Of a stretch of 64,000 nt of DNA, positions 1,099 to 32,221 are shown one piece after another. The stretch's first letter is position 1; every line of letters starts with the position of its first letter. The stretch covers positions 12,140,275 through 12,204,274 of the forward strand of contig NC_134032.1 in NCBI RefSeq assembly GCF_964204645.1, given 5' to 3'. The position numbers and the translations under genes are program-made. A model generated the notes under the pieces. The model was not told where the DNA came from and did not search any database. It worked only from the letters and a program-made list of their open reading frames with translations. This DNA is from Tubulanus polymorphus (lineage: Eukaryota > Animalia > Nemertea).

Positions 1099-3444
1099 AT
1101 GAGACAGTTATATTTGTCGCCGTTTATTATTTGTGCGTTTTATTTTCGCTGGTTGACCGATATCGCCGCAGCTTTGAGTGTGACGAAAGTTTTTCAAAAT
1201 GGAGCTTCGCTGAGCATCGATTTGAAAAGTGAGTTTTTTGTCAATGACTGGGGTCCATTTCACTGCGCGACTTTTCCTCCATATCACATCGACATAACGC
1301 CGGATTCAATTGAAACACTCACCAAAAGTCGGAGGGTTATATCTTTTTTAGTTTAGTTTATTTCCGCAAGAAATTGTAACAAACTTCATATCTATAATGG
1401 ATGTTCCAATATATTCCATAGGCGTCGCCAGGATTTTTTTAGGGGGGAGGGGGTTCGAATATCGGCAACTTGGCGAATCTAGTAAGGCAGCGAAGTTGCC
1501 TTTGACGAGAACGGAAGGTCCGAAGTCCCCACGGGGGGTTTGGGGTCCAACACCAAGACAATTTTGAAAATTAGGAGCGATTTAAAGCGTTTTCCCGCCA
1601 CCTTGAGTTATTACCTTGTGGAAAAAACACGAGAACCACGAAGAGAAACAAATTACAACTACCATTGCATGTTTGTTTTATTAAATATGTATATCTTCAC
1701 AAATAGTATTAAGCTGTTTACAAAACTATGTAGTAAAAAATGAAGAAACCTAGCCGAAAAAGGGGGCTCGTTCGCACCCCCGAACCCCCCTGGCGACGCC
1801 TTTCCTCCCATTGCAGTATATGTTAACGGTCTGGTTGTGGTTAGTGTATTAGAATAGAAAATTACACCCGAAATATTTCAGTGTTTTAAAATCATTTCTT
1901 GTAGTTGTTGATCTTGTGTTTCCGTTTGTAGAAATTAATTCTGAAGTCGTAGTTTCGGAAAAAGGCGGATAATTTTTCTTGGTCCCATAACATTCGACTT
2001 ACACAATGTTTTCTGTAGCATAAATCGTCATAAAATAGCCTGATGATTATTTCTTGATTTCAAAAGCCCGGTCGATCATAACGACGGTCGATGATGTCAT
2101 AAGGGAATCATTCGTGGTGTTTCGTTCGATTTCATGAGTGACGTCATGGATCAATTCGACGGTCTGACTTATTCTTCGAAACTTGCATTTGAACAGGTTG
2201 GAATGTCATCGTTCATTATGGTGATATATCGGGACAAGCTGATGACTCTACCAGTTCTGTGAGCTGCCCGAATGGAACGGTGATGGTTAGCTGCAGGTGC
2301 GCGCCGAACAAGTGCGATGGAGCCATGTTCGCGAGCAACAACGCTTCGACTTGTACCGCCTACAGCGCTTTCATTCTGTTCGGCAAGCTAACTACACAGG
2401 TGCGTCACGCTTTCCAGACGATCTGTCAGCTGATCTGACGGATAACGCCCCCAACAGTCTGAATACCGGTTGACATGACGAACCCCAAACAGTCCGAATA
2501 CCAGCTGATCTGACGGGTTACCCCTAGAACAGTCCGAATGCCAGCTGATCTGACGGGTTACTCCTAGAACAGTCCGAATGCCAGCTGATCTGACGGGTTA
2601 CTCCTAGAACAGTCCGAATGCCAGCTGATCTGACGGGTTACTCCTAGAACAGTCCGAATGCCAGCTGATCTGACGGGTTACTCCTAGAACAGTCCGAATG
2701 CCAGCTGATTTGACGGGATACTCCCACCTGATTGGCCAAACTTTTAACTTTGCATAGACCCCCCTTTTTCCGATGGACCTTTACCAATCCCACTGTCTGA
2801 TAAAAGGGTTTATTATTTATTACAGGCGATTATTGAGTGTATAAATGAAAGTCCAGGACTAGAATTTTTGACGATGGGTGATGTCGGTGACTCGAACTCG
2901 AAAAACCCATCGATGCAGTGCCCGACGGGATGGACCGTGGTTTCTTGTTCAATAATGACTCCGTACGTAAACCAAATAATTTTGGTTTGAAGTTAATTAC
3001 TATTGGGTTATAATCGAAATGTCGAATCAATAAATTATAAGTTATTATTATTATTATGATTAGGAAATGTTTCGGACCTCATATTTCTCGTCTTGTTAGT
3101 TTGAGATTCTCTCTATATTGAAAGCAGATAACTTTATTGATATTAATAACTTTTGTCTTCCACATTTGATTTGTAATATCTTACACAATACGTGAAATGG
3201 TCACCGAACAAGCCTAAAGGGTGAGCTCTGGCGTCTGGTGAAAGGCTTCACGTGCACGTGGCTTTATTCAGTAAATTCAAAGGTACCACGTTTTTTTTTT
3301 ACTAGGCAGAGCAATAAGTACGAAAGCGCGTCTCTCGAACTGCAACCGGAAACTGACTATTGCCAGTCCTACAGTTGTGAAAAATGCAAACTGCAGGCTC
3401 GATGCACGAAACAAGTGGGTAGGTTTAAAATTGAAGTTGGTTGA
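1099..3444 (+). CDS. Cys-rich secreted protein, array copy A (two 6-Cys PCSK9-C/resistin-like modules)
   Basis: Exons 1099-1228 (MRQLYLSPFIICAFYFRWL..., hydrophobic leader), 2197-2399 (WNVIVHYG...SVSCPNGTVMVSCRCAPNKCDG...CTAY), 2826-2962 (AIIEC...CPTGWTVVSC), 3306-3418 (SASLELQ...CQSYSCEKCKLQARCTK). GT-AG introns have phases 1,0,2 and the frame is open. The end is either the donor after 3418 or the read-through stop at 3444. Confidence 0.85.
1420..1801. mobile_element. MITE-like element in copy A intron 1
   Basis: Terminal inverted repeats AGGCGTCGCCAGG...CCTGGCGACGCCT around a non-coding interior with G/C runs. Confidence 0.6.
2424..2725. repeat. Minisatellite, 40-bp unit, about 7 copies
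   Basis: cagctgatctgacgggttactcctagaacagtccgaatgc repeated in copy A intron 2. Confidence 0.9.
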
Positions 3445-4574
3445 ACGCATTTCAATAGCTACGTCAGTATACGTACGATCACTAATGGCTTCCGGTGCTA
3501 TGACTATGTGGTAAGTGGTGATAAAACGAATTTTTAGATTTCTATCGATGTTTTCAAGTGAATTAAAAACTCAAGATGAAGTTTTAAGTTTCGTCGAACC
3601 AATTGTGGTAGGTATAGCGAAGGTCGATATAGAGCGGGAGAAAATCGTCCTGCAGGTTTAGAGATCTGATACGAATTACATTCTAATCAAAAATGCCCAG
3701 CGCACACGGCAAGGAAAAAAAACGTTTTCGATGTGATCTGCTTTGCCACGTGCGTTGGTCATCCCATCGCGGCAGTCCACACTTCACATTTGTGTTCAGG
3801 ATGGAGATGTTTACGAGTTATTTTTTAATTCAAAATGAAGAACAGACATTGGAAATACTCAAATGATCGCCCAGACTTCACGAAACGAGGAAGAAGGGGC
3901 AGTATCGGGCTGCAGAATGTCTGGGAGGCGAAACTCTAGGCTGCATAATATTTGAGGGTGGGTCTAGGCATCAACGCAGAAAGAACACAACCACACGACA
4001 CTTCAACGTACTAATATCATTTCACCATCACACGAAAAAAAGAATATTAGTAGCCAATATTTATTTGTGGGATAGACGTCATACGAAAAATTCTAATCAA
4101 AGACAAACAGCAGACATTGGACATTTTCATCAGTAAACTTTCGAAAACCTTCAGAACTCCTTTCGAGACAATTATACCGAAAGTTCTTCACAAACTTCAT
4201 CCCCTTACAGCAGCTGTGGTGGGAGAGCAGGGAGTAGAGCAGTCACAGTGTGTTCATGGTGAACCCTCTGTGGAAGGGAGGGAGAGCAGCCAGTAGAACC
4301 ATGGACATATAAACTATAGTTTATACGTCCATGGTAGAACAGACTCAGTGTGTTCTTGGTGAGCCACCCATGGCTGTGGTGGGAGATGCAGTGTTCCAGT
4401 TGAAATTCAGTACTAAGCTTAGACTATGTCATAAGACTTGCAAAAAGGACAATGTAGAATAGCCACGCTGACGTGGAGAACTGACAATAAGTTTAAAACC
4501 CACTATATACAGAATTTAAGAGATTAGAAACGAATTATATTTGTCAAGAATTAAAATCTATGTATAGATAAGCT

Positions 4575-4980
4575 AATGGAACAGTCACGGTGTGTTCTTG
4601 GTGAACCCCTCACAGCTGAGGTGGAAGAGAAGTGAATAGAACAGTCACAGTGTGTTCTTGGTGAACCACCCAGAGCTGTGGTGGGAGAGCGGCGAATAGA
4701 ACAGCCACAGTGTGTTCTTGGTGAACCCCTCACAGCTGAGGTGGAAGAGAAGTGAATAGAACAGCCACAGTGTGTTCTTGGTGAACCCCTCACAGCTGAG
4801 GTGGAAGAGAAGTGAATAGAACAGTCACAGTGTGTTCTTGGTGAACCCCTCACAGCTGAGGTGGAAGAGAAGTGAATAGAACAGTCACAGTGTGTTCTTG
4901 GTGAACCACCCAGAGCTGTGGTGGGAGAGCGGCGAATAGAACAGCCACAGTGTGTTCTTGGTGAACCCCTCACAGCTGAA
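4575..4980. repeat. Minisatellite, 60-bp unit, about 7 copies (degenerate copies at 4200-4390)
   Basis: acagtcacagtgtgttcttggtgaacccctcacagctgaggtggaagagaagtgaataga, in two interspersed variants. Confidence 0.9.
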
Positions 4981-5240
4981 CTGACACAGTAGGTTTCATT
5001 TTTCAACCCGATGAAAATACCATTTGCTGCAAATAATCGAACAGTTTTCAAATGATGCAATCATATTATTCTAAAATGAATGCACTAACAATATATGTAT
5101 GTAAATTATTCAAACGTCAGGTCTGGAAACCGTCAGTTCGGAATATATTGCATTGAGCCGCTACTGCTGGTTCATTTACGCATCAGTAACTTTATCCCAC
5201 GTCATTGCGCCTCTTCCAGAATGTTTAGAGAAAAAAAAAT

Positions 5241-7063
5241 ATGAGACGGCTATGTTCGTCTGTATTTCTTATTTGCGCGTTTCATTTTCGCTGGTTGGTT
5301 TATTTCGCCTCAGCGTCGCGTGTGACGAACGTTTTTCGAAATGGAGCATCGCTTAGTGTCGATTTGACAGGTGAGGATTTTTTTTCTCATAAATACCGTT
5401 TCACGTAATAACGTATAGAACTCGGTGAAATGAAATAATGAAACTGTCGTAATGAAATGTGAAACGGGCCTCAGGGACCAGTTTAAGATCTTCGTCCCGT
5501 GTATCCACCCTCCTGCAATTTTTGGACATAAGTTGCAACTGGGCTCCGTGAAGCTGTTTCTGTGTGGCCCCGCGTCGCATGCATCGGGCTTAAGTTAAGT
5601 AAACAGGGGTTCCTGCGAGTTCCATAGAGTTGTGTCTCTAATCTAACGTTGAGAGGCTCAATCGAACATGAGCTAGTAATTACTGAGGATTCAAATTTTG
5701 ACAACCGAGGCTATCGTAGATCATAACAAAATCATTAGATTTGCAAGCGACAGACCAATCTCCAAGAAGGTTATTTTAGATTTAGATTTAGAATTAACGA
5801 TGATGTTAGTAGGGGAATACACGACAGGATCTACATAATATTTGATTACGTCATAGGGGAAAAATGGGGCAGCAACCATCGGGACGATCTATATTTGAAC
5901 TGATTGGGATTTTCAAATGTCTATTTGAACAGATTGGAATGTCAGTGTTCATTACGGTAATCACTCGCTCCCTGCAGACGACGCTCCGAGTTCTGTAAAC
6001 TGTCCAGATGGTACGGTGATGGTTAACTGCAGGTGCTTGAACAGGTGCGACGGCGCCAGGTTCACTTCGGCATGTACGGCCTATAACGGCCGAACCAATC
6101 CGCCGGGAACGACTCGGGTACGTCACGTAACACAAGCCGTCTATCCAAAATCCACGTTCACGCCGATATTAAAGGCAGTCTCATTATAGCCTGTCGACCT
6201 TGCGGGTAATCGAAGATTCGGTTAGCCGTGTGTGGACTGAAGTTTATACGTGTATCCACCCTCCTCCTGGTGGACTGTAACGAACCCCACCGTTTGTGTT
6301 CTTTTTTTCATTCAGGCAATCATTGAATGTATACCTAAAAGTCTGGAGCGAGACTTTTTAACTGTGGAAGCCACTGGAGAAGCAACGATAAATGAATTTT
6401 TGCAAGACCCGAAAGTTAGCTGTCAGCCTGGGTGGACCGTTGTCTCCTGTACACTTCACTCTCTGTAAGTGCCAGGGGCCGTATTCACGAAGTACCCGTA
6501 AGTTGCGTGTCACGTTGGATTTACGGGTGCTTCGTGAATACGGTCCCAATACAGCTCTCATTTCTGCCATTTGAATAAGAACTCTTAAAGTAAAACTCAC
6601 ATAATTAAAACAAACTCATTTGAACCGTATGATGTAACCCCGAGTAAACCCTGAATGATGCAACGGGTTCAATAAGTAAGCTTTATAAGTTCTTAGGTAT
6701 TAGTCTAAATGTGGTATATTGGCCGTTTAATAACAGTTTTAACTGTGATTTGCTTGCATCTTGACGGATGTGACGTCAAGTGCATAACACCTAGTGACTA
6801 GGGAACTAACAAGCCATCGTGGCAATAAATGTTGTAAGCTTTACATTTCTTTATTTGCTCTGATAGTCACTCTTCAAACATCAAATAATAATCGGATGAT
6901 ATCTTATAATCAATGATCACGTATTTCTAGATGGAGTGATATTTACCCAAGTGCGTCTCTTGAACCGCATCAGCAAACTCAAGGTTGCCAGTCCTACGAA
7001 TGTGGAAGATGCAAATTGCAAGCTCGGTGCGCGAAACCCTCGGGTAGGTTTAACGAAAGTTAG
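5241..7063 (+). CDS. Cys-rich secreted protein, array copy B
   Basis: Exons 5241-5370, 5933-6117, 6316-6464, 6931-7043 (donor GTAGGT; read-through stop 7061-7063). Same phases and 12 conserved Cys as the other copies. Confidence 0.85.
6475..6548. repeat. Near-perfect 27-bp inverted repeat (short MITE-like hairpin)
   Basis: ggggccgtattcacgaagtacccgtaa...ttacgggtgcttcgtgaatacggtccc, 25/27 complementary. Confidence 0.8.
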
Positions 7064-7789
7064 TAGGAGGTGTGACAAGAAGTAGTGAATATCTGTGCCT
7101 TTTTTATGCGGTAAGTATACCTCCCGATTTAACTAACCATTAAATTCGTGCATGCTAAAACTAAACGCGCATCATTTGCGGTAGGTAATCACCGATATCA
7201 ATGTTGGTTATAGCAGGCACCAATTTTGGCCTGCAAAGCCTAGATCTCGGGGCTATAGTCCAGTATAAGGCATTATAATTCGCGTGTTGAGTAACAGTGC
7301 GTTCTATGGCTAGTGTTAACAGCAAATGACCGTTGACAGTCGACACCTTGATTAAACGATGAGCTGACGTGTCGACCTGTCAACCTATCAACGATATCTG
7401 CCTTTAATTGCTATTCTTATTCATAATTTTCTTTGCTTCTCATAAATCCAGTATATAATCATTATTATACTCTTTATTTCACTATAAAAAAACTCTTACG
7501 CTACTAGATGTCTACTGTCAACCGTCCTTTACTGTCACCACCTAACTGGTTTGTAAAGTGTCTACTGTCGACATTCCTGTACAGTCATCACCAATCCGGG
7601 GTTCGTATGGTCCCTATCAACCGTCCTGTTGAGTCATCGCCCTGGTATGTAGGGTGTCGCTTGTCATCAGCTGTAGAATACGTTCTATCGAGAATCTATT
7701 TTCAACTTCCGAAAGGAATTCTACACATTGCGCTATAATGCCGCATATCACACTCGAGCCTAGATCTCTAACACAGGGTTTGGTTCACT

Positions 7790-8030
7790 CGACTTCAGAA
7801 TGTCTGAGGGATGCAGATACCGACTGTAGAATGCTGTCCTTAGAGGTGCAGGTCCACACTGTAGAATGTCTGAGGGTTGCAGAATTTCTAAGAGGTGCAG
7901 ATACCGACTGCAGAATGCTGTCCTTAGAGGTGCAGGTCCACACTGTAGAATGTCTGAGGGTTGCAGAATTTCTAAGAGGTGCAGATACCGATTGTAGAAT
8001 GCCTTAGAGGTGCAGGTCCAAACTGCTGTA
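7790..8030. repeat. Tandem repeat (~78-bp higher-order unit of a ~28-bp motif)
   Basis: actgtagaatg...gaggtgcaggtcca units, related to the 28.4-29.0 kb satellite. Confidence 0.8.
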
Positions 8031-8374
8031 GGCCTACTGACTCTTATTAGACACGGACCAATTTGGTACGGACATATTTGGCCCAGGCCAATTCATCTCC
8101 GCACGATCGCGGCTTACGTTAAGACTAAGGTATTATCCCGGTCCGTAATAATTTCACTTTTCGTACATACAATATGTTTTTCTGACAGCTAATGCGCGGA
8201 TGTATATAATCAATACCAATAGCATCGTTCTGACGCAAAGACTTTATCGAACATTCAGTTCTGTATAAAGGTTTGAATACTGCGCATTGGGTCGCAACAT
8301 AAAAACTCCTCCTGTTGTTTTTGCGCCAATCCGGAAAGTTTGGTAGTTTTGCTGAAGAATAATATGAGACGGTC

Positions 8375-10063
8375 ATGTCAGTGTTTTTAATTTACGCGTG
8401 TTATTTTCACTTGTTGGTTTATTTCGCTGCGGCGTCGCGTGATGTGGCGAACGTTTTTCGAAATGGAGCATTGCTTAGTGTCGATTTGACAGGTAAGGAT
8501 TCTTATCAAGAACTGTGAGGATTCACGACTCCCGATCTATAAATACAATACTGTTGTTGAAACGTTGACAAAAGTCGTTTTTATCTTGACAAGATAACCC
8601 TTGAAACAGACTCCTTGATTCTGTGAGTTTAATTCAACCAGTTCCACCGTGTTGTCGATTTGACTCTTTTGTGTGAAGAGCCCTGTGGAAATTAGGCAGT
8701 TCAAATCCACAGAGATTTTTTATTCTGGATGACCACTCAGCGAGTCCCATGATTTTTCACAATTCCTTCTCTCCGATAGGCCGACAAAGGTAAACGCAAT
8801 GGTTAAAAAGAAATTTAAGGGGGGTTTAACCATGACACTCGATCTTCTGGAAGGGTCTGTAAATAAAATCATCATATTTAGGGGAACCTTACCGTCAGGT
8901 CTACAGTTGAATGGGGTTCCCGAACTCTTAAATGAATCAATTATCGATGAAAACTATACCGATGCCTGAGAAGAAGAATGAATGTATTGTATATATTACA
9001 TTTGATGGGTACTGTGATAATATATGGATTCGGGAGTCTAAAAATCCAGTTTAGGTTCATTGAAAATTGACTAATTTTGACAACGCAAAAACCTATTGCT
9101 TGTCACGCCATCTGGTGGGATAGCTGGTGTTGCGGGTTGCCCGTTATCTATAAACGATTTGATGACTTAATTTGAAGAATAACGGAGCAGCAGTTCGGGA
9201 CGGTCAGAAATATTTCTCTTGAATGTCTATTCGAACAGGTTGGAATGTCAGTGTCTATTATGGTGATCGCTCGCCCCGAGGAGACGGCAAGTCCAGTTCA
9301 GTGAGCTGCCCGAATGGTACGGTGATGGTTAGCTGCAGGTGCTTGCACAGTTGCGACGGCACCAGGTTCGCGAATCGTTTTCAAACATGTGCCGCCAATA
9401 ATTATAGGGCGGCAACTACTCAGGTACGTCACTTGACACTAGCAGATTATCCGAAAGGCCGTTCACATAATTTTTCCGAGGGGGTACTCATGGGTTTCTT
9501 AAAGTCTTAATTTAAGTCTTAAATCTTAAACTTGCTTAAACTTAAAGTCTTAATCTTGCATGTAATCATAGTCTTAGAATTATCTGCATGGGTATAGTCT
9601 GATATTCAAACTTACATCCACCCTGTCTCCTGATGGATCGCGTGTAATGAACCCTATCATTTTGTGTTTCATTTCATTCAGGCAATTATTGGATGTGTAC
9701 CGGCAAGTCCGGAGCGAGACTTTATAACAGTGGAGGCCACAGGAGTTCCATTGAAATACGGCTATTTGAAAAACCCAAAAATTTGGTGTCAACCTGGATG
9801 GACCTTGGTTTCGTGTGCACTACATTCCCCGTAAGTGCCAGGGTACAGTTTCACTAGAGGAATTAACTCCTAATTCGATTGAAAATAAACTAAATTGATA
9901 TTGAGCCTTGAAATATAATTGATGATTACATATTTCTAGGTGGAGTCATGAGTACCCGAGTGCGTCGCTCGAACTTCAGCAGCAAATTCAAGGCTGTCAG
10001 ACCTACAATTGCGGGCGATGCAGACTGCAGGCTCGGTGCACAAAACTATCGGGTAGGTTGTAG
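8375..10063 (+). CDS. Cys-rich secreted protein, array copy C
   Basis: Exons 8375-8492, 9239-9423, 9682-9830, 9940-10052 (read-through stop 10061-10063). The ancestral ATG at 8364 is out of frame; an in-frame ATG at 8375 gives MSVFLIYACYFHLLVYFAAAS. Confidence 0.75.
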
Positions 10064-10394
10064 GTGAATTTTGCGGAGTAATATCGGCGAAATCAAGTAG
10101 TGAATTTCTGTGCCTTTTTCATGCTGTAAGTATACCTCAACATCTAACAAAGCTTTTATTGATGTTTCTAAAACTAAACCCCATATCATCATAGTGGTCA
10201 TCATCAAATTGCGGTAAGTAACACCCGGAAGGTGGGAGTTTGTGGGGAAGAGCTGTTAGTATCTATATGCGGGGTAACTATTGTGGTAAATGGAGGTACA
10301 ATTGTTGTAAACGGGAATGGACTATTGTAAAGGTTAGAGGACGAGGTAGCGTAAGTGTAGGAGATATCAGACTAGGCCCTTGCCAGATTTTAGG

Positions 10395-10775
10395 ACACAG
10401 GAGTTCCATTGAAATACGGCTATTTGAAAAACCCAAAAATTTGGTGTCAACCTGGATGGACCTTGGTTTCATGTACACTTAATTCCGCGTAAGTGCCAGG
10501 GTACAGTTTCACTAGTAACGCCTAATTCGATTGATACACTGAATTGACGAAGAAATTAGATCGATTTAGTAGACAATCTGGTAGATAATTAAACCTTTTG
10601 TGAAAATTTGGCCAAGGGCGGCTCAGTTAACATAGACACTCTATAGTGAAACAAGATAAAAAGTTAACTAGATAACTTGATCTCCTGTACACTACACTCT
10701 TGGTGAGTCGCAAGGCCATCATTCCGGCGGATTCGAACCTGATAACATTTCAAGAATGCCACGGTTCAAAATCCT
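10395..10775 (+). pseudogene. Orphan partial exon-3 duplicates of the array genes
   Basis: ~10395-10515 repeats the 3' half of copy C exon 3 with its donor and intron start. ~10681-10775 repeats the end of copy D exon 3 and the following intron (cf. 12812-12905). Confidence 0.7.
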
Positions 10776-11518: not shown

Positions 11519-13562
11519 ATGAGACAGTTATACTTGCCGGTGTTTTTGATTTGCGCGTGTTATTTTCACTGGTTGGTTTATTTCGCCGCCGCGTCGTGTT
11601 TGCGGAATGCTTTTCGAAAAGGAGCATCGCTAAGTGTCAATTTAACAGGTAAGGATTTTTATCATGAACTGCGTGTGACCAGTTACACAAGTTTCGTATA
11701 ATTACATAAGTACTCAATGAAACTGTAATGAAACGTTAAGCCGTTCTGTTAAGCAGGCCCCAGTGACCACTTGCACAGTAAAATGGCTTACTTTTTAAGC
11801 TCGGTTTTATAGCCAAATAAAGCCGATTGATAGATGGACCACACTTAAGACTGAAGACTGAAGGCTGAGTTAAGCTATGGAACTCAGGAATTCAGTTCTA
11901 TAGAGTTTTCAGTTAAAGCTGACTTGATAGAGGCATAATTGAAAATGAACCTGAGCCAAAAAGAAATCGAATTTAACTTTTATGCAACAAAAGGGTTCTG
12001 TAATTTTGAGAATATCGTACCCCTGTAGACCGAAAATTTAATGTAGACCATCGTGAATTATAGAATAGTCCCTAGTTACTTGGATGATGTCATAGGGAGA
12101 TCTAAAAGCGACAGTCCGATGTCTAGGTAGGGTCTTTTGGATGCCATAGGGGAATTTTTCAATCGTGAAAGTTCATCTTTTCCGGGTTCTGTAGATAAAA
12201 TCGTTAAACGTCGAGTTTATGACATCAAGTTTGTAAAAAGGTTTAAAAAGGATTCGGGACGGTCTGAAATCTATTTCTATTCAAGGTTGGAATGTCAGTG
12301 TTTATTACGGTAATCACTCGCTCCCAGATGACGACGCTCCCAGTTCTGTAAGCTGCCCGTATGGTACGGTGATGGTAAGCTGCAGGTGCTCGAACAGGTG
12401 CGACGGTGCCTTGTTTAAACGTCGTTTCCCGACATGTACCGTCAACAACGCGCGGAACTCGGGAACTACACGGGTACGTCACGTGACACCGTAGCAGACG
12501 AAACAAAAACTTCGTTTACGTCGATATTTCGAGGGTTGAACCAAAGTCCAGTGATTAACTTTTTGAAACGGGGGGGGGGGGGTTTACAGCGTGAATTCAG
12601 CTTACTCGACCCAGTTGCATAATTCTGAGGTACAATTTGACTCAAAGCCCTGATGGCCCGAACTCCACTTCTGTTCTTTTCATTCAGGCAATTATTGGAT
12701 GCATAACTAAAAGCCCGGAACGAGAATTTCTAACGGTTGCGGCCACAGGAAATGTGTCGGGGTACTATATGGAGGACCCAGAAGTCCGGTGTCAACCAGG
12801 ATGGACCTTGGTCTCCTGTACACTTCACTCTTGGTGAGTCGCAAAGCCATCATTCCGGCGGATTCGAACCTGATAACATTTCAAGAATGCCACGGTTCAA
12901 AATCTTTCAGCCTGATTTCACAGCTTGAGGCGCAGCTTATCGATGATGTCATTAACAGCCAATCATAAATCCCATTTTAGTTTAGCAAGGGCTTTTCCAT
13001 GTTATCCTTCTTTGCGACAGCGCCACAAGGCTGTGATCGTCGCCGCTGTATGTTTTTGTGCGGCAAACCTGCGCATGTACGGTACCTGCGTACTCGGACT
13101 AGTGTGGCAGGGTTTCGTGCTGTGGCTGCAAGTTGAGCGATGCCATCAGGATCGAATACCTACTGAGGGAGGATGGTCAAGGGAAGCTGCAATTCAAGAA
13201 TAAACTCTCCAATATAATTTGCAAAATAACACACTAGTTATCTACAAAATATTGAAATCAAGTACTAACTTTACTAACTTTTGCCTAAAAATTGGACTGC
13301 AGGGAAAATTGCAACTAACCTAACGATAAACATGGCTTTATATCCAGATTAAAAAGAAGCCATTTAACCTGGGAAATAAAAGATTTTGCAGGTAAAAATC
13401 TATAACGAATGCTCGCGTGTGTTTAGGTGGAGTAGTGGATATACGTCGTCTCTTGAGCTGCGGCAGCGAACTCAAGGCTGCAAGTCCTACAATTGCGGAA
13501 GATGCAGACTGCAGGCTCGATGCACAAAACTATCGGGTAGGTTGAAAGTAGTGTTCATTTAA
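11519..13562 (+). CDS. Cys-rich secreted protein, array copy D
   Basis: Exons 11519-11648, 12286-12473, 12688-12833, 13427-13536 (read-through stop 13560-13562). Frame open. Confidence 0.85.
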
Positions 13563-15589: not shown

Positions 15590-15957
15590 TACAACGATAA
15601 CTGATATCCTACTGCACACTAGCGCCACCTGGTAGATCCCCAGATGCCACGAGTGGAATCCTCTATTGTCGCAGTAGTTGATATCCTTCTGCTCACTAGC
15701 ACACCTGGCGGATCCTCACTTCCCATAAACGGAATCCTCTATTGCTGAGTAGTTGATATCCTACTGCAGACTAGCGCACCTGGTGGATCCTCACTTGTCA
15801 CAAGTGGAGTCCTCTATTGTCGCAGTAGTTGATGTCCTACTGCTCACTATCACACCTGGCGGATCCTCACTTGCCATAAATTGAATCCTCTATTGCTACA
15901 GTAGTTGATGTCCTACTGCTCACTAGCACACCTGGTGGATCACTCACTTGCCACAAG
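15590..15957. repeat. Minisatellite, ~59-bp unit, about 6 copies
   Basis: gatatcctactgctcactagcacacctggcggatcctcacttgcca...ggaatcctctattg repeated. Confidence 0.85.
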
Positions 15958-16357
15958 TTATAATTTATACTGATTGTCGAACGCCCTCTCATCACAATTA
16001 TAATGAGAGAGCAGCGAGTAGACCTATAATCAGTTCACTCCCCTCACGGTTCTAATTGCCGAGACCGTAGGGTTTTCTTTTGTTATTATATATTGACGAA
16101 ATGGTTTGCGAGCTACTTTTGAGTACTTCCGTATTGAAATAAGAAATCTAATTGTTTTAATGACGATCCAATTAAGCTGGTTAATGATGTTCTTGACACG
16201 ATAAATCATTAACACCAGTAGCACCGGCCTGGCTTATGAACCGCCAGTTTTGTAGAGTTGGAATTAGTGTTCGGAATAACTGCATAACAGCTCCGTATAG
16301 ATTAGTCAAGTTGTTGTGGCACCCGTCCGGAAAGTTTGGTCGTTTTTGGTGAAAAAT

Positions 16358-18413: not shown

Positions 18414-20452
18414 GTAGGTTTAAAGTAGGTTCCGTTTTCTTTAGGAGAATCAGTAAGAGAATTTCTAAATTCTATAAAATTTCTATCATTATACATTTGT
18501 ATATCTAGCTTTATTTCAAGGAAAATTTTACGATAAGTTGTTTTGCCATGAAAGGTCGGCATTGATATAAAAAAGCGAAGTTGATTATTACGGTAAGTCT
18601 ACCCTGCAGATCTAGCAGAGAGCTTTTATTGATGCTTCAAAACAAGACGCGCTTCAACTGCGGTAAGTAACGCCCGAAATCAATGTCGGTCATTTATATC
18701 GGCCTGCATGTACGTGACCTTGATCTCTCACACTCGACGGACATTTTCATCGAAAATGAAGTAACTTTATCGGACTCGAAACATCAGGCATATCAGATGT
18801 TATTATCGACTGAAAAATGATCGTTCGGACTACTGAGCAACGATTTCAAAGCTACATACAGAATGTCCGAGAATATCTGCAGGTCCAGGCCACAAAGCAG
18901 AAAGGACACAACTCGCCATTAACATTTTCATTTCATGCAAAATAAGAATATTAGTTGTTATTTCTATTATATGTATCGGGTGGTGACCCGGGCGTTCTTT
19001 GTAACTGTGGCAACGACGTATCAAATACGTACATATCATAGCAGACAGCTAATGAGAGAACTGCCGATTCGACGCCCCTCAGTTCTAAGACATTCTTTTG
19101 TTAATGAGTATTCACGAAATGTTTTGTGGGTTACTCGGGTGTATTTTCGTTTTCAAACAAGAAATTTAAGAGTTTTTATGACTGATACAAGGTCAGACGT
19201 TAGATTATTAATACCAGTAGCGATGGTGTGACGCAACCAGTTCCTCGAACTGTCGGTTGGAATAAGAGTGGTTGGAATCACTAAATGACAACGTCTGTTT
19301 TAAGCTGTCGTTGTTTGGTCGACAGTTCTGTCAAGTTGGGATATTGCAAAAACCTTTAAAAACCGAAATTGTTATCAACGAATTTTCAAAGAAATGATTC
19401 TCCGGGCTTAGCGCAACGATGAGCTGCATGACTGAGGGTGCAAATCCAGACTGCAGAATGCCTGCCGGGTGTGGGTCCACGCTACAGAAAGAATGCATCT
19501 AAAACTAGACAGAACTTCAACACTTGCCAATAATATCATGGCAGTTGGGAAAGAGAATGAGGATCGCGCGGACAGAATACATGAGTTGCCAATATCTATT
19601 ATTATGTTTTTTCGACAGCAAATGGGCAGATGTTATAAATTATCAATATCAGTTATAGCGCTGTTTAAGTATTGGATGTCCAAGTATGTAAAATTGGGAT
19701 CAAGTGAATTGAGCCACAACACAAAAACCCCTTCTGTTTTTAGTTGTTTTTGCACCAGTTCATGAAGTTTGGTTTTTCTGCTGGTCAGGCCTCTGGGTTT
19801 GCTTGTCAGGCAAACTCTGACGATACCCAGAACGTCGGGCTCAACCCAGAAACTTGCCACAACAATGCACACGCGGACACTCGGCCAACGTAAAAAGAAA
19901 CACGTCCTTCGGCTTAGAAAAACCAGGGAAGTGTCATCACACTTCCCTGGAAAAACCAAAGCGTCACTGAATAACTGCCGCATACTCGCCGCATAGCGAG
20001 AATAGTTGAATAAGTTAGAAGAGAGTGAGGGCATGGCTTAAGAATGTGAGGAATGTTCAAAATTAGTATATAAGTCGAAGGTTTTTGGCTCGAAGAGGAG
20101 AATGATATTTTGGCGACACATTGCCTATATCTGTTTGGTATCGGGCTGTTGTCGGACTCTTTTACCGTAACCATGGTTGCAATATTGGCCCTGAAACATG
20201 AAAACCTGTAATTGTTATTGGTTCCATTTTTCAGATACGAGTAAATGAATATTTCAATATCTGTCACTCGAAATTTGTCGTAAATGGATAAACTTTGTCG
20301 ACTATAAGTTTAGAGTGCTCGCGTTGTATATTACGATACACGTTCGTAGAATAGGAATAAATGCACGGAATCGCTACATAACAACTCCGCATGAATTTGT
20401 GTTTCAAGTTTTCGTTGCTACAGTCCTGAAACTTTGGTCGTTTTGTGAAAAT

Positions 20453-22334
20453 ATGAGACGGTTATCTTCGCCGGTATTCATTTTTTGCGTGTTTTATTTT
20501 CGTTGGTTGGTTTATTTCGCAGCGGCGTCGCGTGTGACGAGAGTTTTTCGAAATGGAGCATCGCTTAGTGCCAATTTGACAGGTGAGGATATTCTTATCA
20601 AGAACTGTAAAGATTCATGAGTCCAGATCTATAAAGTATGGTGGCTGATAAGGGCCATCACGTAAAATTCCTGGTATGCAATGAAGACGCCAGAACGTCA
20701 AAACGAAACAAAAACGTCGAACTTCCTTTAAAAAGTCATTCTTGGTCCGCCAAAACAAAGAATGTCCATTTAGGCACCCCTGCCAAAACAAACTTAGTAA
20801 TTTTTTAGAGAAAATTCGACGTTTCGAAATTTTTCGTGGTTTTTGCGGGGTCACCAAAATATCATTCTCCTCCCCGAGCCAAAACCTTAGACTTATATAC
20901 TAATTTTGTACATTCCTCACATTCTTAAGCCATGCCCTCACTCTCTTCTAACCTATACAACTATTCTCACGATGTTTTGGTTGTGGCGCCAAGATGAAAG
21001 TTTTTTGCTATCGGACTTTTTAGAGGAAATTCAGCATTTTTTTCGTTTTGGCGTTCTGGCTTGAATCAGCCACTTCCATGAATGCAATACCGCTGTTGGA
21101 ACGTGAATGAATTGTTAAGTCGTTTAATAAAACCTTAGAGTGATTATCTCGACAAGATGATAACACAAAGGAGAAACGGGAAAATGGATCCTGTGAGTTT
21201 TATTCAACCAGTTCCAGTGTTGTCAACTTGACTATCGCGTGAAGAACCCTGTGTAAATTAGGTATTTCAAATCCACATTCTTACATTCTAACTCTGGATG
21301 ACCGAAATTGACCGGTGATTTTTTGAAGATCACTTTCCCCCTGTAGGCCGAGCATGCATGATGAAAAGAATAATTAAAGGGGGCTTTAAATGTAACCGCC
21401 CGATCTTCGGGAAGGGCCAATAGATAAAATGATTATATCGATATCATCGGGAAATCCATATTCTTCTCCGCCAGGTCTAAAGTTCAATTATCTCAGTGAT
21501 CCGATGACGTCAGTAGGAGTAAAATGGAGCAGCAATCTTCGGGACGGTCTGAAATATTTTTCTTGAATGTCTTATTTGAACAGGTTGGAATGTCAGTGTC
21601 TATTATGGTGATCGCTCGCGCCGAGGAGACAGCGAGATCAGTTCTGTAAGTTGCCCGAATGGTACGGCGATGGTTAGCTGCAGGTGCTCGAACTGGTGCG
21701 ACGGCACCAGGTTCGCGGATCGTTTACAAAAATGTACCGCCAGTAATTATCGGTCGGGAACTAATCAGGTACGAAATGTGACACTAGACTTTCACATCTA
21801 GGAGCTATTCAGTGGTTTCTAATAAGTCTGAATTTAGCTTGACGATCTCGTACGTAAATATAGTCTTAGGATTAACTGTATTCGTATAGTCTGATATTCA
21901 AACTTAGATCATCCAAGATGGATCGCATCGCGTGTAACGAACCTTATCACGCCGTGTTTTATTTTATCCAGGCAATTATTCGATGTATACCGACAAGACC
22001 GGAGCGAGACTTTATAACAGGAGTTCCAGAAGGAAGCGGTTTTCTGAAAAACCCAAAAGTCTGGTGTCAAACTGGATGGACCTTGGTTTCGTGTACACTA
22101 TTTTCCCCGTAAGTGCCAGGGTACAGTTTCACTAGAAGTACTAACTCGATTAAAGATAAACTAAATTGATATTGAGCATTGAAATATAATTGATGATTAC
22201 ATATTTCTAGGTGGAGTCATGAGTACCCGCGTGCATCGCTCGAACTTCAGCCGCAAACTCAAGGCTGTCAGACCTACAATTGCTGGCGATGCAAACTGCA
22301 GGCTCGGTGCACAAAGCTATCGGGTAGGTTGTAG
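20453..22334 (+). CDS. Cys-rich secreted protein, array copy F (closest to copy C)
   Basis: Exons 20453-20582, 21584-21768, 21972-22108, 22211-22323 (read-through stop 22332-22334). Confidence 0.85.
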
Positions 22335-23332: not shown

Positions 23333-25682
23333 ATGAGGCACTTATATTCGCTGGTGTTTTTTATTGGTGCTTTTTATCTTTTAGACCGGTTGAATGATAT
23401 CACCGCGCCATTGAGTTTGGAGCGAGTATTTGAGAACGGAGCATCGGTAACTACTAATTTAACGGGTAAGTTTTGAAGCATATTTGAATAGTTAGATCAC
23501 GCATTCTGTTAAACGTTCAGATCGGGTCGAACTCGCAACTGCGACTCGGCCCAGGTTTCATATGCGCTAAACCACGAGTCAAAAATTAATCTACACAATT
23601 CGCAACCGCTTTCACAGGTGTGGGTTAAAACTGACTCAAAAATTTAACAGGATTTAATTGAATCCTAATGTAACTACGAGCTGATTCATACTGAGAACTG
23701 GGGAAATTGAGCGAATACTAATGGGTTTTGTACCTCGCTATTTATAGCGATACAAAATCACTATGTCGCCCTTCTAGCACCTTCTTCACACAGGGAAATT
23801 CAAAATTTTCATATTTACCGGCATTCATTTACCGTGTGTATAAAAAGGTTGTAACTACGCCACAAGACGATACACTAATATCTATGAAAAAAAACTGGAT
23901 TTATAAGATACCCAAGGGTTCAAACGAACTAACGCCGGACCTGATTTCGCCCAGTCCTGAAGTGTGGCTGTCTCCACAGAGATTTACGTAGCTCTACGAT
24001 CCTTGTGTAACCGATCTGTGGTAACATCAGCCACTAAGGTTCTTGGTGAAGACCTGGTGCGATTATACCCTTTTCTACCAATCTACTAAGTATGAATTTT
24101 ATATTTTACCCCGCTCAAGAATTAATTATGAAGCCAGATAGGCATATTCCCTATTTCTAAAGGGTGGAGTGGCAGAAGTTGAATACGAACTAGTGTCCAG
24201 GCCAAGTACCCCTTATTGAGGAGACGATGTGTCTTTGTCCGTACATTATTTGAGGCTTGAACCTATAAACCCCCTGAACCTCATTGTTATGATATGTCTT
24301 TAAAACAGGCTGGAACATCACTGCATATCAAAGTGAAAACTCAACAAGGACGGGTGCATCTAGCAGTTTTGTGAGCTGCCCGAATGATACGGTGATGGTA
24401 AGCTGCAGGTGCTCGAACAGGTGCAACGGTGTCAGATTCTGGAGCTCCAATATCTCGGCATGCGTGACCCCTTACGCCTGGATGTCACCGCGAACTTTTC
24501 GGGTACGTCATGTGACGCTAGCAGACGATCGGGCTTAACAACGGTTATGCCACCAGATGGCGTGACTAACTGTAGGTTTTCAATTTCAATGAACCGTGAC
24601 TCCTGGATCGACACCTCCAAGAACATTGGAAAACACGGAAACTGGAGAAAGAAACATGTTTTCGAGTGTTTCCCTGTGTCGTGTGCCTTCATGAGAAACG
24701 AGAAACGTGGTTTCGGGAAACAATGTTTCCAAGATCAAGCATGTTTGATTCCGTGTTTCCGTGTTTCCCTGTGTCACGCACACGGCACATTGAAACGGAT
24801 GGACATTTTCGTTTAACTATCGTTTCCGTGATGCCAAACGCGATGCGTCTGTTCCCGCGTGTGATCTGGGAAATGTTGTCGCTTCTATTAAACGTACGTG
24901 ATTTCCAGTGTCACGTGCGTTGAGCTTTTGGCTCTTGTTTCCATCATTAGAATCTAAAATTCAGCTGTAAGCATCTCATTTTGATAATGCCGAGATTACT
25001 TTTTAGATATCTAGTTATAAATACATGTTGTAAATATTCCATTTTTTTACGAAAAATTTCGCTTTTCAAAATGTTTTCAGTATATTTTTCTCTATGTGAC
25101 AGACAATCATCGAGTGTGCACAGATAACGCCGGGGCGAGAATTTTTGACGGTTTCACCAGCCGATTATCAGAGAGACCCATCAGTCCAGTGCCCATCTGA
25201 ATGGACCGTGGTTTCATGTACACTATTCTATTATTCACGGTAAGCCCTTCTGAGCCTCCATTACAATATAAATTCATAATCTATGTTCTGTACACCAGGA
25301 TAAAGTTCCACAATCGTGAGTTAGAGTTAACTCTGAACTCAGGATCCAGTTCCGCAGTTGTGAGTTAAGAGTTTAACTCTTGAGTTGAAAAATCAGTTCA
25401 TTCTCAATGTCAAGAGTCAAATCTAATTCAGAATTGTGGAACTTGATCCAGTCTCGAACCGGACCGAGTTTCACCAACTCTCAGATTTATTCATCGGTTC
25501 AATTTTGTGAAACAGAATGGTTCATAATGTATAAAGAGGTATCTTGAACATCATGAAATATTTTTAGGTTGCACAGTCACTACGGAAATGCTACGTTGAA
25601 TATTTTTACTCGTACCTGTACTTCCTCCAGTTGTGGATGGTGCAAAATACAAGCTCGTTGCGTCAAAATATCAGGTAAGTAA
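23333..25682 (+). CDS. Cys-rich secreted protein, array copy G (divergent G/H subgroup)
   Basis: Exons 23333-23465, 24309-24502, 25103-25239, 25568-25674 (donor G|GTAAGT; read-through gives GK-stop at 25680-25682). All Cys retained. Confidence 0.8.
25300..25452. mobile_element. Dispersed palindromic MITE family (CCAGTTCCACAGT...GAGTTAACTC...GGAACTGG)
   Basis: Related copies at ~25915-26020, 31800-32010, 56400-56510, 58780-58890 and 62865-62950. Confidence 0.6.
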
Positions 25683-27507: not shown

Positions 27508-28398
27508 CTGTCAAATCCACACAAGCGATGCTCCATTTCGAAAAAAAAATATTCGTCATACGCAACACCGCGGCGAAATAAACCAACCTGTGAAAATAAA
27601 ACGCGCAAACATAACCGTCTCATATTCATTCTTTCTACCAAAACCAGGAACTTTCCGGACGGGTGCAACAGCAACAGGAGTTTTTGCGTCGCGACAAAAT
27701 GCAATATTCAAACATTTTACTGAACTGACATTCGATAATTTAAAACAGCGTTACTGGTATTGATTATATCACATCCGCCCATTAGCTGTCGGAAAACACT
27801 TACATTTTGTTGTATTGCAGAAATGAAAATTATCACCGTGATTTTAACATCTAAACACCCGCGAACGAATAGCTTTTAAATACCGGTGCATTTGAAAGTC
27901 ATTACGTAAGCCGCGATCTGGCGGAGACGATTTGGCCTGGGCTAAATTGGCCCGTGCCTAAGTGCCGAAATTGCCCAAATATAGGGCCTACTGCATTCAA
28001 CATTCAGCATTCATCACAGTCCGGTCCTCGTTGAGTATTGTCAAGTGAACCAACCCGGTGTTGGAGATCTAGGCTACGCCAACATGGGTACCGACCATAC
28101 CCAAAATTAGTTCCTACTTACCGCAAATGATGGTGACCACTTGCGCGTATTTTTAGAGTATGTCATCCATAAATGCTTGAGGGTATACTTACCGTGTAAA
28201 GAAAAATCACAGAAATTCACCGCTAGATTTCACCGATAATTACTACGCAAAATTCACCGACTTCAATTAAACCAACGGCCACTTGTTTCATGTATCGAGT
28301 TTCGTGTATCGCATTTTACATTTTACACAACTTTAGGACCGGCAATCGACAGTTTCCGGTCGCAGTTCGAGAGACACGCACTTCTGTGATTGCTCAAC
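27508..28398 (-). pseudogene. Inverted pseudogenic array fragment (degenerate exon 4, spacer, frameshifted exon 1)
   Basis: The reverse complement of ~28278-28398 resembles exon 4 (tctctcgaactgcgaccggaaact...) with disruptions. 27508-27623 is exon 1 with an internal deletion/frameshift. The spacer matches the region upstream of copy C exon 1. Confidence 0.75.
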
Positions 28399-28419
28399 CT
28401 TGAAATACGTAGATGGCAC

Positions 28420-29020
28420 TTAGTCTGAGAGGTGCAGGTCCAAACTGTTGAATATCTGACAGGTGCAGGTCAAGACTGTAGAATATCTGAGAGATGCATG
28501 TCAAGACTGTAGAATATCTGAGAGGAGCAGGTCTGAGAGGTGCAGGTCCAAACTGTAGAATATCTGAGAGGTGCAGGTCCAGACTGTAGAATATCTGAGA
28601 GATGCAGGTCCAGACTGTAGAATATCTGAGAGATGCAGGTCCAGACTGTAGAATATCTGAGAGATGCAGGTCCAAACTGTAGAATATCTGAGAGATGCAG
28701 GTCAAGACTGTAGAATATCTGAGAGATGCAGGTCAAGACTGTAGAATATCTGAGAGATGCAGTCAAGACTGTAGAATATCTGAGAGATGCAGGTCAAGGC
28801 TATAGAATATCTGAGAGATGCAGGTCAAGGCTATAGAATATCTGAGAGATGCAGGTCCAGACTGTAGAATATCTGAGAGGAGCAGGTCTGAGAGGTGCAG
28901 GTCCAGACTGTAGAATATCTGAGAGATGCAGGTCCAGACTGTAGAATATCTGAGAGATGCAGGTCCAAACTGATAAATGTCTGACAGGCGCAGGTCCATA
29001 ATGTTGAATGTCTGAGGGGT
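28420..29020. repeat. Minisatellite, 28-bp unit, about 20 copies
   Basis: agactgtagaatatctgagagatgcaggtc repeated. It produces the spurious repetitive ORFs at 28394-29080. Confidence 0.92.
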
Positions 29021-29933: not shown

Positions 29934-32221
29934 ATGAGGCAGTTCTATTCGCTGGCGTTTTTTATTGGAGCGTTTTATTTTCACTGGTTGAATGATATCA
30001 CTGCGGCATTGAGTTTGGAGCGAGCATTTGAGAACGGAGCATCGGTGACAGCTGATTTAACGGGTAAGTTTTTGAAGCATATTTGATCACGCGTTCAGAC
30101 ACCTTCAGTCGAACTCGCAACTGCGACTCGGTCCAGGTCTCAAGGTGGTGCTGAGTATGAAAAAAAAATCTAAATCGCCATAGAATATGTTTTCGGTAAA
30201 ACACGAATATTAACACAATTTCAAATCTAAACCACGAGTCGAAAATTAGTTTACGCAACTCGCGCTAAAATCTAAAATCGACTCGAGAGTCTAACAACAA
30301 TTCTATCAAAATGAATTAACTACGAGCTTATTCAAACTGTGAACGGAGGAAAACTGGACGAATACCTGTAAGTATTGTAGCTCAGATTCGTTATTGACAG
30401 CGATACAAAAAAGAACACCGATGAATAAAACTAGATATTCGCCCCCTAATTCTTACACCGCGAAATCTAACATTTCTATAGACCGGTTTTCATACTGTGT
30501 ATAAAGAAAAAAGTTGTAACTACGCCACAAGACGATACACGAATATCTACAGTAAAAACAAAAACTGGATTAGAAAATGCCCGGTGCGATTATACCCTTT
30601 TCTACCAATTATTACTAAATATGAATTTGATATTTCATCCTGGGCTCAAGAGTTATCTATCAAACCAGGCACCTATTTGCAATTGCTAAAATAGGTGGAG
30701 TGTGGCAGAAGTTCAATACGAACTCCAGTGTACTCAGAAGCTACCAGGCCAAGTCTACCCAATCGCAGAGATGATGGATCTTTGTTCATGCAGCAGCGTC
30801 GGAATCAGGATTTCAGGGAGGCGTGCACAAATTAGGAAGGGGGTCGGGGTCCTCCCCCAGAAAATTACTTAGAAACAAAACCAATAACAAAATAGCAAGG
30901 ACGTTAGGAGGGGGCACCCCCCCCTGGATCCGCCGCTGTGCAGTATGAGCCCATAACCCCCCCCCCCCCACCTCATTCGTATTGTCTTTCAAACAGCAGG
31001 CTGGAACATCACTGTTTATCAAGGTGAACCCTCAAGGACGCGTCGGCGCAGTCTAGTTAGCTGTCCGACTGATATGGTGATGGTTAGCTGCAGGTGCTCG
31101 AACAGGTGCGACGGTGCGAGATTCGCGCGCTCCAATATCACATGCGAGGCCTTTGTGCGGCCACCAGAAATTATTCGGGTACGTCATGTGACACCAGCAG
31201 ACGATTAACGCTTATTTTTATCACCAGATAGCCGTTAATAGACTAACAGCAGTTTTCAATGATTATTCTAATGAACCATTATTCCCTGTATCAAGTTTCG
31301 TCTATCAAACAATCACCTCTAAAATGATATGAGTGTATTTTCGTCACATGGTTTCGGGTAACAATTTTTCCAAGATCAAATGTTTTACTTTGAGTGTCTG
31401 CCTGTGCCAACGCACAAGGAAACAGGTATACGAGAAACAGCTTTTGGATTTCGTGTTTCTATGTTTCCGTTGTGCCAAACGCAAACGATGCGTCTACACC
31501 CGCAAACATGTTTTATTAGGGAAACATTGCTTGCAGACACGATGTTTCTGATTTCTCGTGAACATACGCGATACCGAGAAACGTCGAAGGTATTTTCACG
31601 TATTATATTCTTTGTTACAGGCAGTTGTCGAATGTACACCAATAGTCCCGCAGCGAAGATTTCTAACAGTGACGCAACCGGGCAGTTTTCTAAAAAACCC
31701 ATCAGTCGAGTGCCCGTCTGGATTGACTGTTGTTTCGTGTACACTTTTTTCTCCGTAAGCCCCTCTCGGCACAATATCAATAATCTATGTCCTTGTACAC
31801 CAGGTTCACCAGTTGTGAGTTAGAATTAACACTGAACTCAGGATCCAGTGCCACAGTTGTGAGTTAGAGCTTGGAGTAATCATTTGACAAATGATTACTC
31901 CATTAAGGGTAGAGTTAACTCTGAACTCATGACCCAGAGTTTTACTCTGAGTTGAAATCAATTCATTTTCAATGTTTTGACTCAACAGTCAAATGCCATT
32001 CAGAACTGTTGGAAAACTGTCAGATTTCTCTATCAATTCGAATTTCGTGAAACAGGGTGGTTTATAACGTAGAGTTATCTTGAACATGATCTTCTTGAAA
32101 TGTTTTTAGGTTGATTCGTTCACAGAAAAATGCTATTTTAAACATTTCTACTCGGAACTGTACTTCCTCCTGTGTAAAATGCGCTATACAAGCTCGGTGC
32201 GTCAAACTACGGGGTAAGTAA
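29934..32221 (+). CDS. Cys-rich secreted protein, array copy H (divergent G/H subgroup)
   Basis: Exons 29934-30063, 31000-31178 (NAGNAG acceptor), 31621-31754, 32110-32213 (donor G|GTAAGT; read-through gives GK-stop at 32219-32221). Confidence 0.8.

Follow-up and report, generated by a model that had tools for sequence, protein, structure and literature searches.

A 64,000-nucleotide stretch of the nemertean Tubulanus polymorphus genome (RefSeq assembly GCF_964204645.1, contig NC_134032.1, forward-strand positions 12,140,275 to 12,204,274), hereafter called the window, was examined for a tandem array of genes. A first-pass annotation, made from the sequence alone, had proposed that this array encodes secreted proteins built of two modules related to the C-terminal domain of PCSK9 and to resistin. 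By motif scans, and by tblastn searches in which the exon peptides of a single copy served as queries, eight complete four-exon gene sets were found, all on the forward strand and together spanning positions 1099-32221 of the window, i.e., from the ATG of gene 1 to the stop codon of gene 8. The gene models, with the lengths of their conceptual proteins, are as follows.

1099-3444, forward strand: gene 1; exons 1099-1228, 2197-2399, 2826-2962 and 3306-3444; 202 amino acids
5241-7063, forward strand: gene 2; exons 5241-5370, 5933-6117, 6316-6464 and 6931-7063; 198 amino acids
8375-10063, forward strand: gene 3; exons 8375-8492, 9239-9423, 9682-9830 and 9940-10063; 191 amino acids
11519-13562, forward strand: gene 4; exons 11519-11648, 12286-12473, 12688-12833 and 13427-13562; 199 amino acids
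16358-18508, forward strand: gene 5; exons 16358-16487, 17436-17620, 17819-17967 and 18304-18508; 222 amino acids
20453-22334, forward strand: gene 6; exons 20453-20582, 21584-21768, 21972-22108 and 22211-22334; 191 amino acids
23333-25682, forward strand: gene 7; exons 23333-23465, 24309-24502, 25103-25239 and 25568-25682; 192 amino acids
29934-32221, forward strand: gene 8; exons 29934-30063, 31000-31178, 31621-31754 and 32110-32221; 184 amino acids

The eight-gene, four-exon array is thereby confirmed. A GT donor and an AG acceptor were present at all 24 introns, the positions of which are homologous among the eight genes; their phases are 1, 0 and 2, the introns falling respectively after the leader exon, ahead of the final strand of module 1, and inside module 2. 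None of the conceptual proteins (184-222 amino acids) contains an internal stop. Six-frame scans with exon profiles recovered exactly these eight full exon sets and four relics, the exons of the array scoring E-values of 1e-17 to 1e-34 (for gene 1, 2e-32, 5e-26 and 6e-24).

All eight proteins have the same layout, namely a hydrophobic leader encoded by exon 1, a spacer of 18 amino acids, module 1, and module 2. The sequence motifs that the first-pass annotation had quoted for the two modules are indeed present, and its count of 12 invariant cysteines was borne out in every protein when counted from the W-N motif onward, with six cysteines in each module. Gene 1 is the most divergent among genes 1-6 and its product is acidic, with an isoelectric point (pI) of 4.9, while genes 7 and 8 form a divergent subgroup; gene 7 has five N-x-S/T sequons, and the most basic product is that of gene 8, with a pI of 9.8 and a net charge of approximately +14.

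The eight genes had also been described as intact, which holds for their open frames but not for two of their ends. In gene 3, four nucleotides have been deleted just after the ancestral ATG (8364), which now opens an out-of-frame reading frame of eight codons; this short frame overlaps the ATG at 8375, which is new and in frame. Since the deletion puts ATG 8364 out of frame, the gene 3 protein must start at ATG 8375, and it thus lacks the basic MRR start; a 3-nucleotide insertion follows further on in the same leader (8364-8400). In gene 5, loss of the usual stop codon has added a C-terminal tail of 31 residues, rich in Lys and Ile (18400-18508), and one residue has been deleted from the C-x4-C loop; this copy also has Val instead of Ala in the LQARC motif. 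As a separate observation, the first loop of module 1 contains an RGD tripeptide in genes 3 (9265-9300) and 6 (21610-21645), at the site where a D-D-A-x-S motif is conserved in the wider family; the tripeptide reflects a single event shared by the two genes and could be due to chance.

Family membership and fold

Pfam scans and folding were performed on the separate exon peptides, the joined proteins being used only for the checks of open reading frames, for alignment, and for substitution rates. For module 1, the Resistin family (PF06954) was the best Pfam match of the exon-2 peptides and recurred below threshold in five of the eight, with E-values from 2e-4 to 0.11; the best score, that of gene 8, was 22.1 bits (E 2.3e-4) against a gathering cut-off of 25, while genes 7, 4 and 1 gave E-values of 0.012, 0.019 and 0.11, respectively. 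For module 2, PCSK9_C3 was matched below threshold by three of the five exon-3 peptides tested, the best being that of gene 2 (E 0.0028; 18.3 bits against a cut-off of 26.7), and that of gene 4 giving E 0.015. It is to be noted that full-length paralogues of the two-module family likewise score below the Pfam thresholds.

The assignment was also approached transitively. The exon-2 profile, run with HMMER against 1.84 billion representative sequences, returned 46 matches at E-values of 1e-3 or lower, among which 17 carried PCSK9_C3 above threshold (best E 6e-27), 11 carried PCSK9_C1, and four had weak Resistin matches. One of them, P0001, was matched at E 5.7e-18 and itself scores 64 bits for PCSK9_C3 and 60 bits for PCSK9_C1. 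Also among the matches were two-module proteins that share the architecture of the array proteins, from Lingula anatina and from T. polymorphus itself, a PAN-containing protein of Saccoglossus, and bacterial and protist proteins. At the level of sequence profiles, the array family thus has significant homology to bona fide members of the PCSK9 C-terminal module family. In a profile search of the PDB, schistosomin appeared together with scytovirin and MYCBP2 at E-values of 0.06-0.9; it was dropped, as its structure paper, which speaks of a novel scaffold in the title, mentions neither resistin nor PCSK9.

The array proved to be one cluster of a much larger family. Genome searches covered the 268-Mb assembly of 77 contigs, in which the window is C8:12140275-12204274. 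The exon-2 profile detected at least 43 module-1 exons on eight contigs, in clusters on C1, C6, C10 and C11 and as further copies on C5, C7, C8 and C9, in agreement with the earlier proposal of an expanded family. Three dispersed genes on C8 (L009, L010 and L011) have a set of exons 2, 3 and 4 like that of the array genes. Exons at C1:31.27 Mb are 100% identical to the RefSeq model LOC141898098 (P0054), and the neighboring gene matches LOC141898093 (P0033) at 89-96% over three coding-exon matches. The last 29 residues of LOC141898093, which lie past the usual C-terminus of the family (C1:31263528-31263608), match several other sites on C8 (15.1-15.9 Mb) at 83-93%; they may represent a repeat that was included in the gene model by mistake. 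A tree of exon 2 (62 columns) was mostly unresolved, with support only for the pair of genes 3 and 6 and for a few other clusters; in it, genes 3 and 6 are sisters, genes 7 and 8 group with L009 and L011, and genes 2-6 group with L010.

The eight array genes themselves appear to be unannotated, since no matching protein was found in large collections while RefSeq models exist for other clusters. Protein searches by word index yielded at most the queries plus two additional T. polymorphus models, the index and its length window being limiting, and a word search for proteins of the window subfamily within the range of 61-194 amino acids gave no match. As the module lies below Pfam detection, such genes are invisible to routine annotation. 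Full-text literature searches, in which PCSK9 or resistin was paired with invertebrate phyla and in which the Pfam names and accessions and the term resistin-like domain were also used, turned up no account of a family of this kind. The fold and the superfamily are known; what is undescribed in the literature searched is the stand-alone architecture of two modules together with a large, lineage-specific expansion.

For the fold, the T. polymorphus paralogue P0054 was used as proxy, with an alignment that held the array exon peptides as separate rows. Exons 2 and 3 matched the profile of the two-module family colinearly, with hhalign probabilities of 97.8% and 97.4%, respectively, and exon 4 weakly matched (38%) its C-terminal C-x-x-x-A-R-C end; all 12 array cysteines align with cysteines of P0054. 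The P0054 model had a predicted local distance difference test score (pLDDT) of 87.7 and a predicted template modelling score of 0.78, with no helix besides the leader. In Foldseek, the first 29 rows for this model were all PCSK9. In exhaustive VIA-align comparison it superposed on PCSK9 residues 452-605, which we take to be modules M1 and M2, with Z 15.7 and a root-mean-square deviation (rmsd) of 2.4 Å over 137 residues; RELMβ (Z 6.7) and resistin (Z 6.6, rmsd 1.9 Å) followed, and the remainder scored 5.6 or less. Structure search of the ESM Atlas retrieved a PCSK9 cluster at a template modelling (TM) score of 0.73 and mollusc GH10 enzymes with PCSK9_C1 at 0.71.

An array module was also folded directly. 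Exon 2 of gene 3, folded alone, gave a pLDDT of 80, and its top VIA-align match was PCSK9 residues 455-516 (Z 7.5, rmsd 1.9 Å, 57 residues), with resistin (5.3), PCSK9 (5.1) and RELMβ (5.0) in ranks 2-4 and the following match at 3.4. For this 61-residue model, Foldseek placed resistin first and PCSK9 third, both at E-values above 4, and VIA-align was needed for that reason. The predicted structures of P0054 and of gene 3 exon 2 thus agree in the fold of the Cys/His-rich C-terminal domain (CHRD) of PCSK9 and of resistin. Taken with the recurrent sub-threshold Pfam matches and the transitive profiles, these models support the reading of the array proteins as two-module members of this class, and a six-stranded, disulfide-stapled beta-sandwich in the array modules is well supported. 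Each module would contain three disulfides, the pairings being those suggested by alignment to PCSK9 and resistin.

Comparison with the known members places the array proteins more exactly. The P0054 model predicts the same tandem beta-sandwich modules, and the same packing between them, as M1-M2 of the PCSK9 CHRD, and the C-x-x-G-W-T-x-V-S-C motif of array module 2 is what yields its PCSK9_C3 matches. PCSK9 consists of a prodomain, a subtilase and three modules, whereas the array proteins consist of leader, spacer, module 1 and module 2, and have neither the prodomain, nor the protease domain, nor a third module, introns and spacers of the array not having been scanned for Peptidase_S8. PCSK9 is also rich in His, in contrast to the 0-4 His of each array protein. 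Sequence identity to the CHRD is only 12-18%, and the cysteine spacing differs, the array modules having a local C-x-C-x3-C cluster instead of the terminal CC pair.

Resistin and the RELMs (PDB 1rfx, 1rgx and 1rh7) are likewise small and rich in cysteine, and resistin is secreted, as the array proteins are predicted to be. The structural match to them has Z-scores of 5-6.7, rmsd 1.9 Å, and 23-26% identity, and the central resistin pattern C-P-x-G-x5-C-x-C-x3-C-x10/11-C is common to array module 1. The full signature of resistin comprises ten cysteines, C-x11-C-x8-C-x-C-x3-C-x10-C-x-C-x-C-x9-CC; array module 1 has its central part and one distal cysteine, with six cysteines per module. Resistin further has an N-terminal helix that forms a trimeric coiled coil, whereas the segment from leader to module 1 in the array proteins is 18 amino acids long and not heptad-like, and resistin has one module per chain against two in the array. 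The ESM Atlas cluster of resistin listed mostly Chordata, whereas the host of the array is a lophotrochozoan.

The closest relatives are two-module proteins named only as uncharacterized, i.e., P0054, P0033 and Lingula anatina LOC106159076 (P0023), which have the same architecture and end in C-x-x-x-A-R-C. The array genes share with them the colinear leader and modules as well as the introns; when P0033 is matched exon by exon, the breaks fall close to residues 80 and 124, at about the intron positions of the array. Identity between the two sets is only 26-38%, and the array subfamily differs in its extra conserved N-terminal stretch of 18 amino acids, in a W-N-[VI]-[ST] sequon, and in a shorter hairpin in module 2. 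The same module also occurs, again in an extracellular setting, in multidomain proteins of invertebrates, protists and bacteria (mollusc GH10 + CBM_4_9 + PCSK9_C1; fusions with PAN, somatomedin-B and fn2); there it is accessory to enzymes or adhesive domains, whereas in the array it is the entire protein.

Selection on scaffold and loops

The array genes are under purifying selection. The proportion of nonsynonymous differences (pN) was lower than that of synonymous differences (pS) at p<0.01 in 25 of the 28 gene pairs, and whole-gene pairwise ratios of nonsynonymous to synonymous divergence (dN/dS) ranged from 0.31 to 0.68, apart from the youngest pair, genes 3 and 6, at 1.02 with dS 0.13. 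The 12 cysteines are invariant across pairwise dS of 0.13-1.1. At 7% divergence, 12% of the trials of a substitution-only neutral simulation still had an open frame, against less than 1% at 20% or more; the open frame together with the 12 cysteines was retained in less than 2% at the smallest observed divergence and in none of 5000 at higher ones. Considering the pairwise tests and these simulations, the array genes are maintained by selection, and the simulations together with the exon profile E-values exclude a chance origin of the array.

This constraint is unevenly distributed. When the alignment columns were split into a core of strands and cysteines and into loops, following the secondary structure of the P0054 model, the median dN/dS was 0.32 in the core and 0.57 in the loops, and the mean pairwise amino acid identity was 66% and 44%, respectively; the loops do vary more than the scaffold, as had been noticed at first sight. 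Loop dN/dS exceeded 1 in six of the 28 pairs (e.g., 1.9 for genes 3 and 6). The pattern fits a fixed scaffold with faster-changing loops, as seen by pairwise comparison and not by a formal site test of positive selection. The first-pass annotation had written of a family diversifying on a fixed disulfide scaffold; of this, the faster loops stand, while positive selection is not demonstrated by ratios above 1 in so few pairs.

Probable secretion and possible role of the proteins

The leader, judged by eye as a signal peptide, begins with basic residues, continues into a hydrophobic core and closes with an A-x-A-like motif. In seven of the eight proteins, the W-N-[VI]-[ST] sequon for N-glycosylation stands at the very start of module 1, and a strongly basic character is seen in six of the eight proteins in their mature form, with pI values of 8.9-9.8 and net charges of +7 to +14. 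Relatives join the module with the extracellular domains PAN, somatomedin B, fn2, CBM_14 and WSC. As for activity within the fold class, recombinant RELMβ is reported to permeabilise bacterial membranes, the mammalian protein acting at mucosal surfaces (PMC13647132). On the grounds of leader, sequon, charge, the extracellular domains of the relatives and the activity of RELMβ, we favor secreted binding proteins of mucus or epithelium.

In this scheme, the array proteins would enter the secretory pathway through the signal-peptide leader and would be N-glycosylated and secreted. The leader would be followed by the short conserved N-terminal stretch and then by two tandem beta-sandwich modules of three disulfides each, which, going by the model, would pack against each other as M1 and M2 of PCSK9 do. 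The secreted proteins may then act as extracellular binders, with target specificity residing in the variable loops. Overall, we regard it as probable that the array consists of eight functional paralogues encoding a leader and two modules of the PCSK9-C/resistin fold, that their products are secreted extracellular binders, and that they form one cluster of a lineage-expanded family. A more specific role is proposed tentatively: by analogy with RELMβ, the proteins might serve mucosal or epidermal host defence, binding or permeabilising microbes, a role favored by the strongly cationic character of six of the eight. A bolder and rather doubtful extension would see in the family a large, fast-diversifying, germline-encoded repertoire for recognition or antimicrobial action in mucus, and in its stand-alone module the ancestral form, later fused in PCSK9 or placed single-headed on a coiled coil in resistin and the RELMs.

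Several observations weigh against the interpretation as functional, secreted PCSK9-C/resistin-like binders. None of the array exon peptides scanned reached a Pfam gathering score, and sequence searches of the PDB with the exon-2 and exon-3 profiles were not significant, resistin itself appearing at E 0.6-0.8. In a collection of 15 billion proteins that included assemblies of public sequencing runs, no protein was at least 50% identical to the exon-2 profile. The fold of the whole protein rests on the paralogue P0054, which is only 26-38% identical to the array proteins. Charge is not a unifying trait of the family, the products of genes 1 and 2 being acidic, and the hydrophobic core of the leader is long and contains Arg or His, which is compatible with a signal anchor. 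Gene 3, with its shifted start, and gene 5, with its lost stop, may be decaying copies. Three sequencing runs with array DNA were found, none of them on record as RNA; over 5200-10100, these runs, all from one study, showed no splice joints, their contigs being genomic and crossing introns and spacers. Lastly, poly(A) and TATA motifs around the array genes occurred only at background frequency, and are uninformative.

Four other explanations were considered. The first is that the proteins are offensive or defensive toxins from proboscis or epidermal glands, the array being a multigene family of the venom type. Small size, richness in cysteine, positive charge, tandem expansion and fast loops are indeed traits of toxin families, and nemerteans employ protein toxins in mucus and proboscis (PMC6410017, PMC7460313). 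Against this, Pfam scans of the exon peptides gave no known toxin family, dN/dS is mostly below 1, and the literature search found no paper joining resistin with nemerteans. Typical nemertean peptide toxins are, moreover, smaller than the approximately 150 amino acids of the mature array proteins. We consider a toxin function unlikely.

Secondly, the proteins could be endogenous signaling ligands of cytokine or hormone type that, like resistin, act on the receptors of the worm itself. The fold class includes resistin and the RELMs, and module 1 has the central C-x8-C-x-C-x3-C-x10/11-C spacing of resistin, with 26% identity in the structural alignment. The array proteins nonetheless lack the N-terminal coiled coil for assembly into trimers and hexamers, carry two modules in cis like PCSK9 rather than the single head of resistin, and belong to dozens of rapidly diverging paralogues, which suit a repertoire for recognition or defence more than a hormone; such signaling is considered unlikely.

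The third explanation, in which the leader is an uncleaved signal anchor that displays the two modules on type II membrane proteins acting as receptors or adhesion molecules, draws on the same hydrophobic stretch, of about 18-20 residues with Arg or His, and on the conserved 18-residue spacer that follows it. Most of these stretches, on the other hand, end in A-x-A-like motifs (ASA, AAA, ALA) suited to signal peptidase, and the leaders of P0054 and of the Lingula homologue are short and classical, which makes membrane display improbable. Finally, the eight genes might be duplicates that only look intact, being silent or in decay and left over, without expression, from a cluster that was active in the past. 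This is very improbable indeed: the purely genomic sequencing runs without splice joints, the lack of a matching protein model in public collections, the start shift of gene 3, the stop loss of gene 5, the dN/dS of 1.0 between genes 3 and 6, and the true relics inside the array would speak for it, but all eight frames are open, all 24 introns have their splice sites, the 12 cysteines have stayed invariant at dS of 0.13-1.1, pN is below pS in 25 of the 28 pairs, and neutral evolution would have kept frame and cysteines in less than 2% of trials or in none of 5000.

The C-terminal domain of PCSK9 and resistin are both medically prominent, and here, in a lophotrochozoan, the module that they share makes up the whole protein and is present in dozens of gene copies. 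Should the products turn out to be secreted factors with a binding or antimicrobial action, the fold would likely have served innate defence ancestrally, as is known of RELMβ, and the family would offer a simple model for what is bound by the PCSK9 tail.

Relics, repeats and neighboring genes

The four relics recovered by the profile scans all lie within the span of the array.

10397-10486, forward strand: stray duplicate of the latter half of exon 3, located downstream of gene 3 and with no accompanying exons; 93% identical to gene 3 exon 3 by tblastn, profile E 5.6e-15
17294-17332, forward strand: short piece resembling exon 2 that contains a stop and lies immediately upstream of exon 2 of gene 5; weak, E 0.16
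27523-27610, reverse strand: fragment of exon 1, inverted and frame-shifted, in the spacer from gene 7 to gene 8; matched in two frames, at E 3.4e-9 and 0.041
28300-28392, reverse strand: fragment of exon 4, inverted and broken, in the same spacer; matched in two frames, at E 0.0068 and 0.11

The last of these adjoins one of five minisatellites of the array, which are located at 2488-2724 (40-nucleotide unit), 4575-4979 (60), 7796-8025 (84), 15602-15958 (76) and 28423-29020 (31), i.e., in intron 2 of gene 1 and in intergenic spacers. The 84- and 31-nucleotide units have the common core GGTGCAG...GACTGTAGAAT. These minisatellites might promote unequal crossing-over. Within intron 1 of gene 3, contig depth at 8972-9137 is about 2300, against about 45 elsewhere, with many loose ends; this segment is a high-copy dispersed repeat.

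Downstream of the array, the window contains the following features.

33457-34143, reverse strand: FG-nucleoporin-like exon
41438-43849, reverse strand: retroelement open reading frame with reverse transcriptase
44855-45127, forward strand: CHHC zinc finger of the U11-48K type
49463-50587, reverse strand: single-exon GT11 fucosyltransferase
52626-55166, forward strand: TPR protein and an adjacent, unassigned open reading frame of 385 amino acids
56628-57422, forward strand: TFIIH subunit Tfb4
59056-60700, reverse strand: EF-hand gene, with a Pro/Gly/Tyr-rich repeat at 60565-60699

Upstream of the coding regions of the array, a motif CC(G/A)GAAAGTTTGGT is conserved approximately 25-40 nucleotides before the start codon in genes 1-6 (e.g., within 8300-8363) and is not present in genes 7 and 8. 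It may be an element of the 5' untranslated region or of the core promoter.

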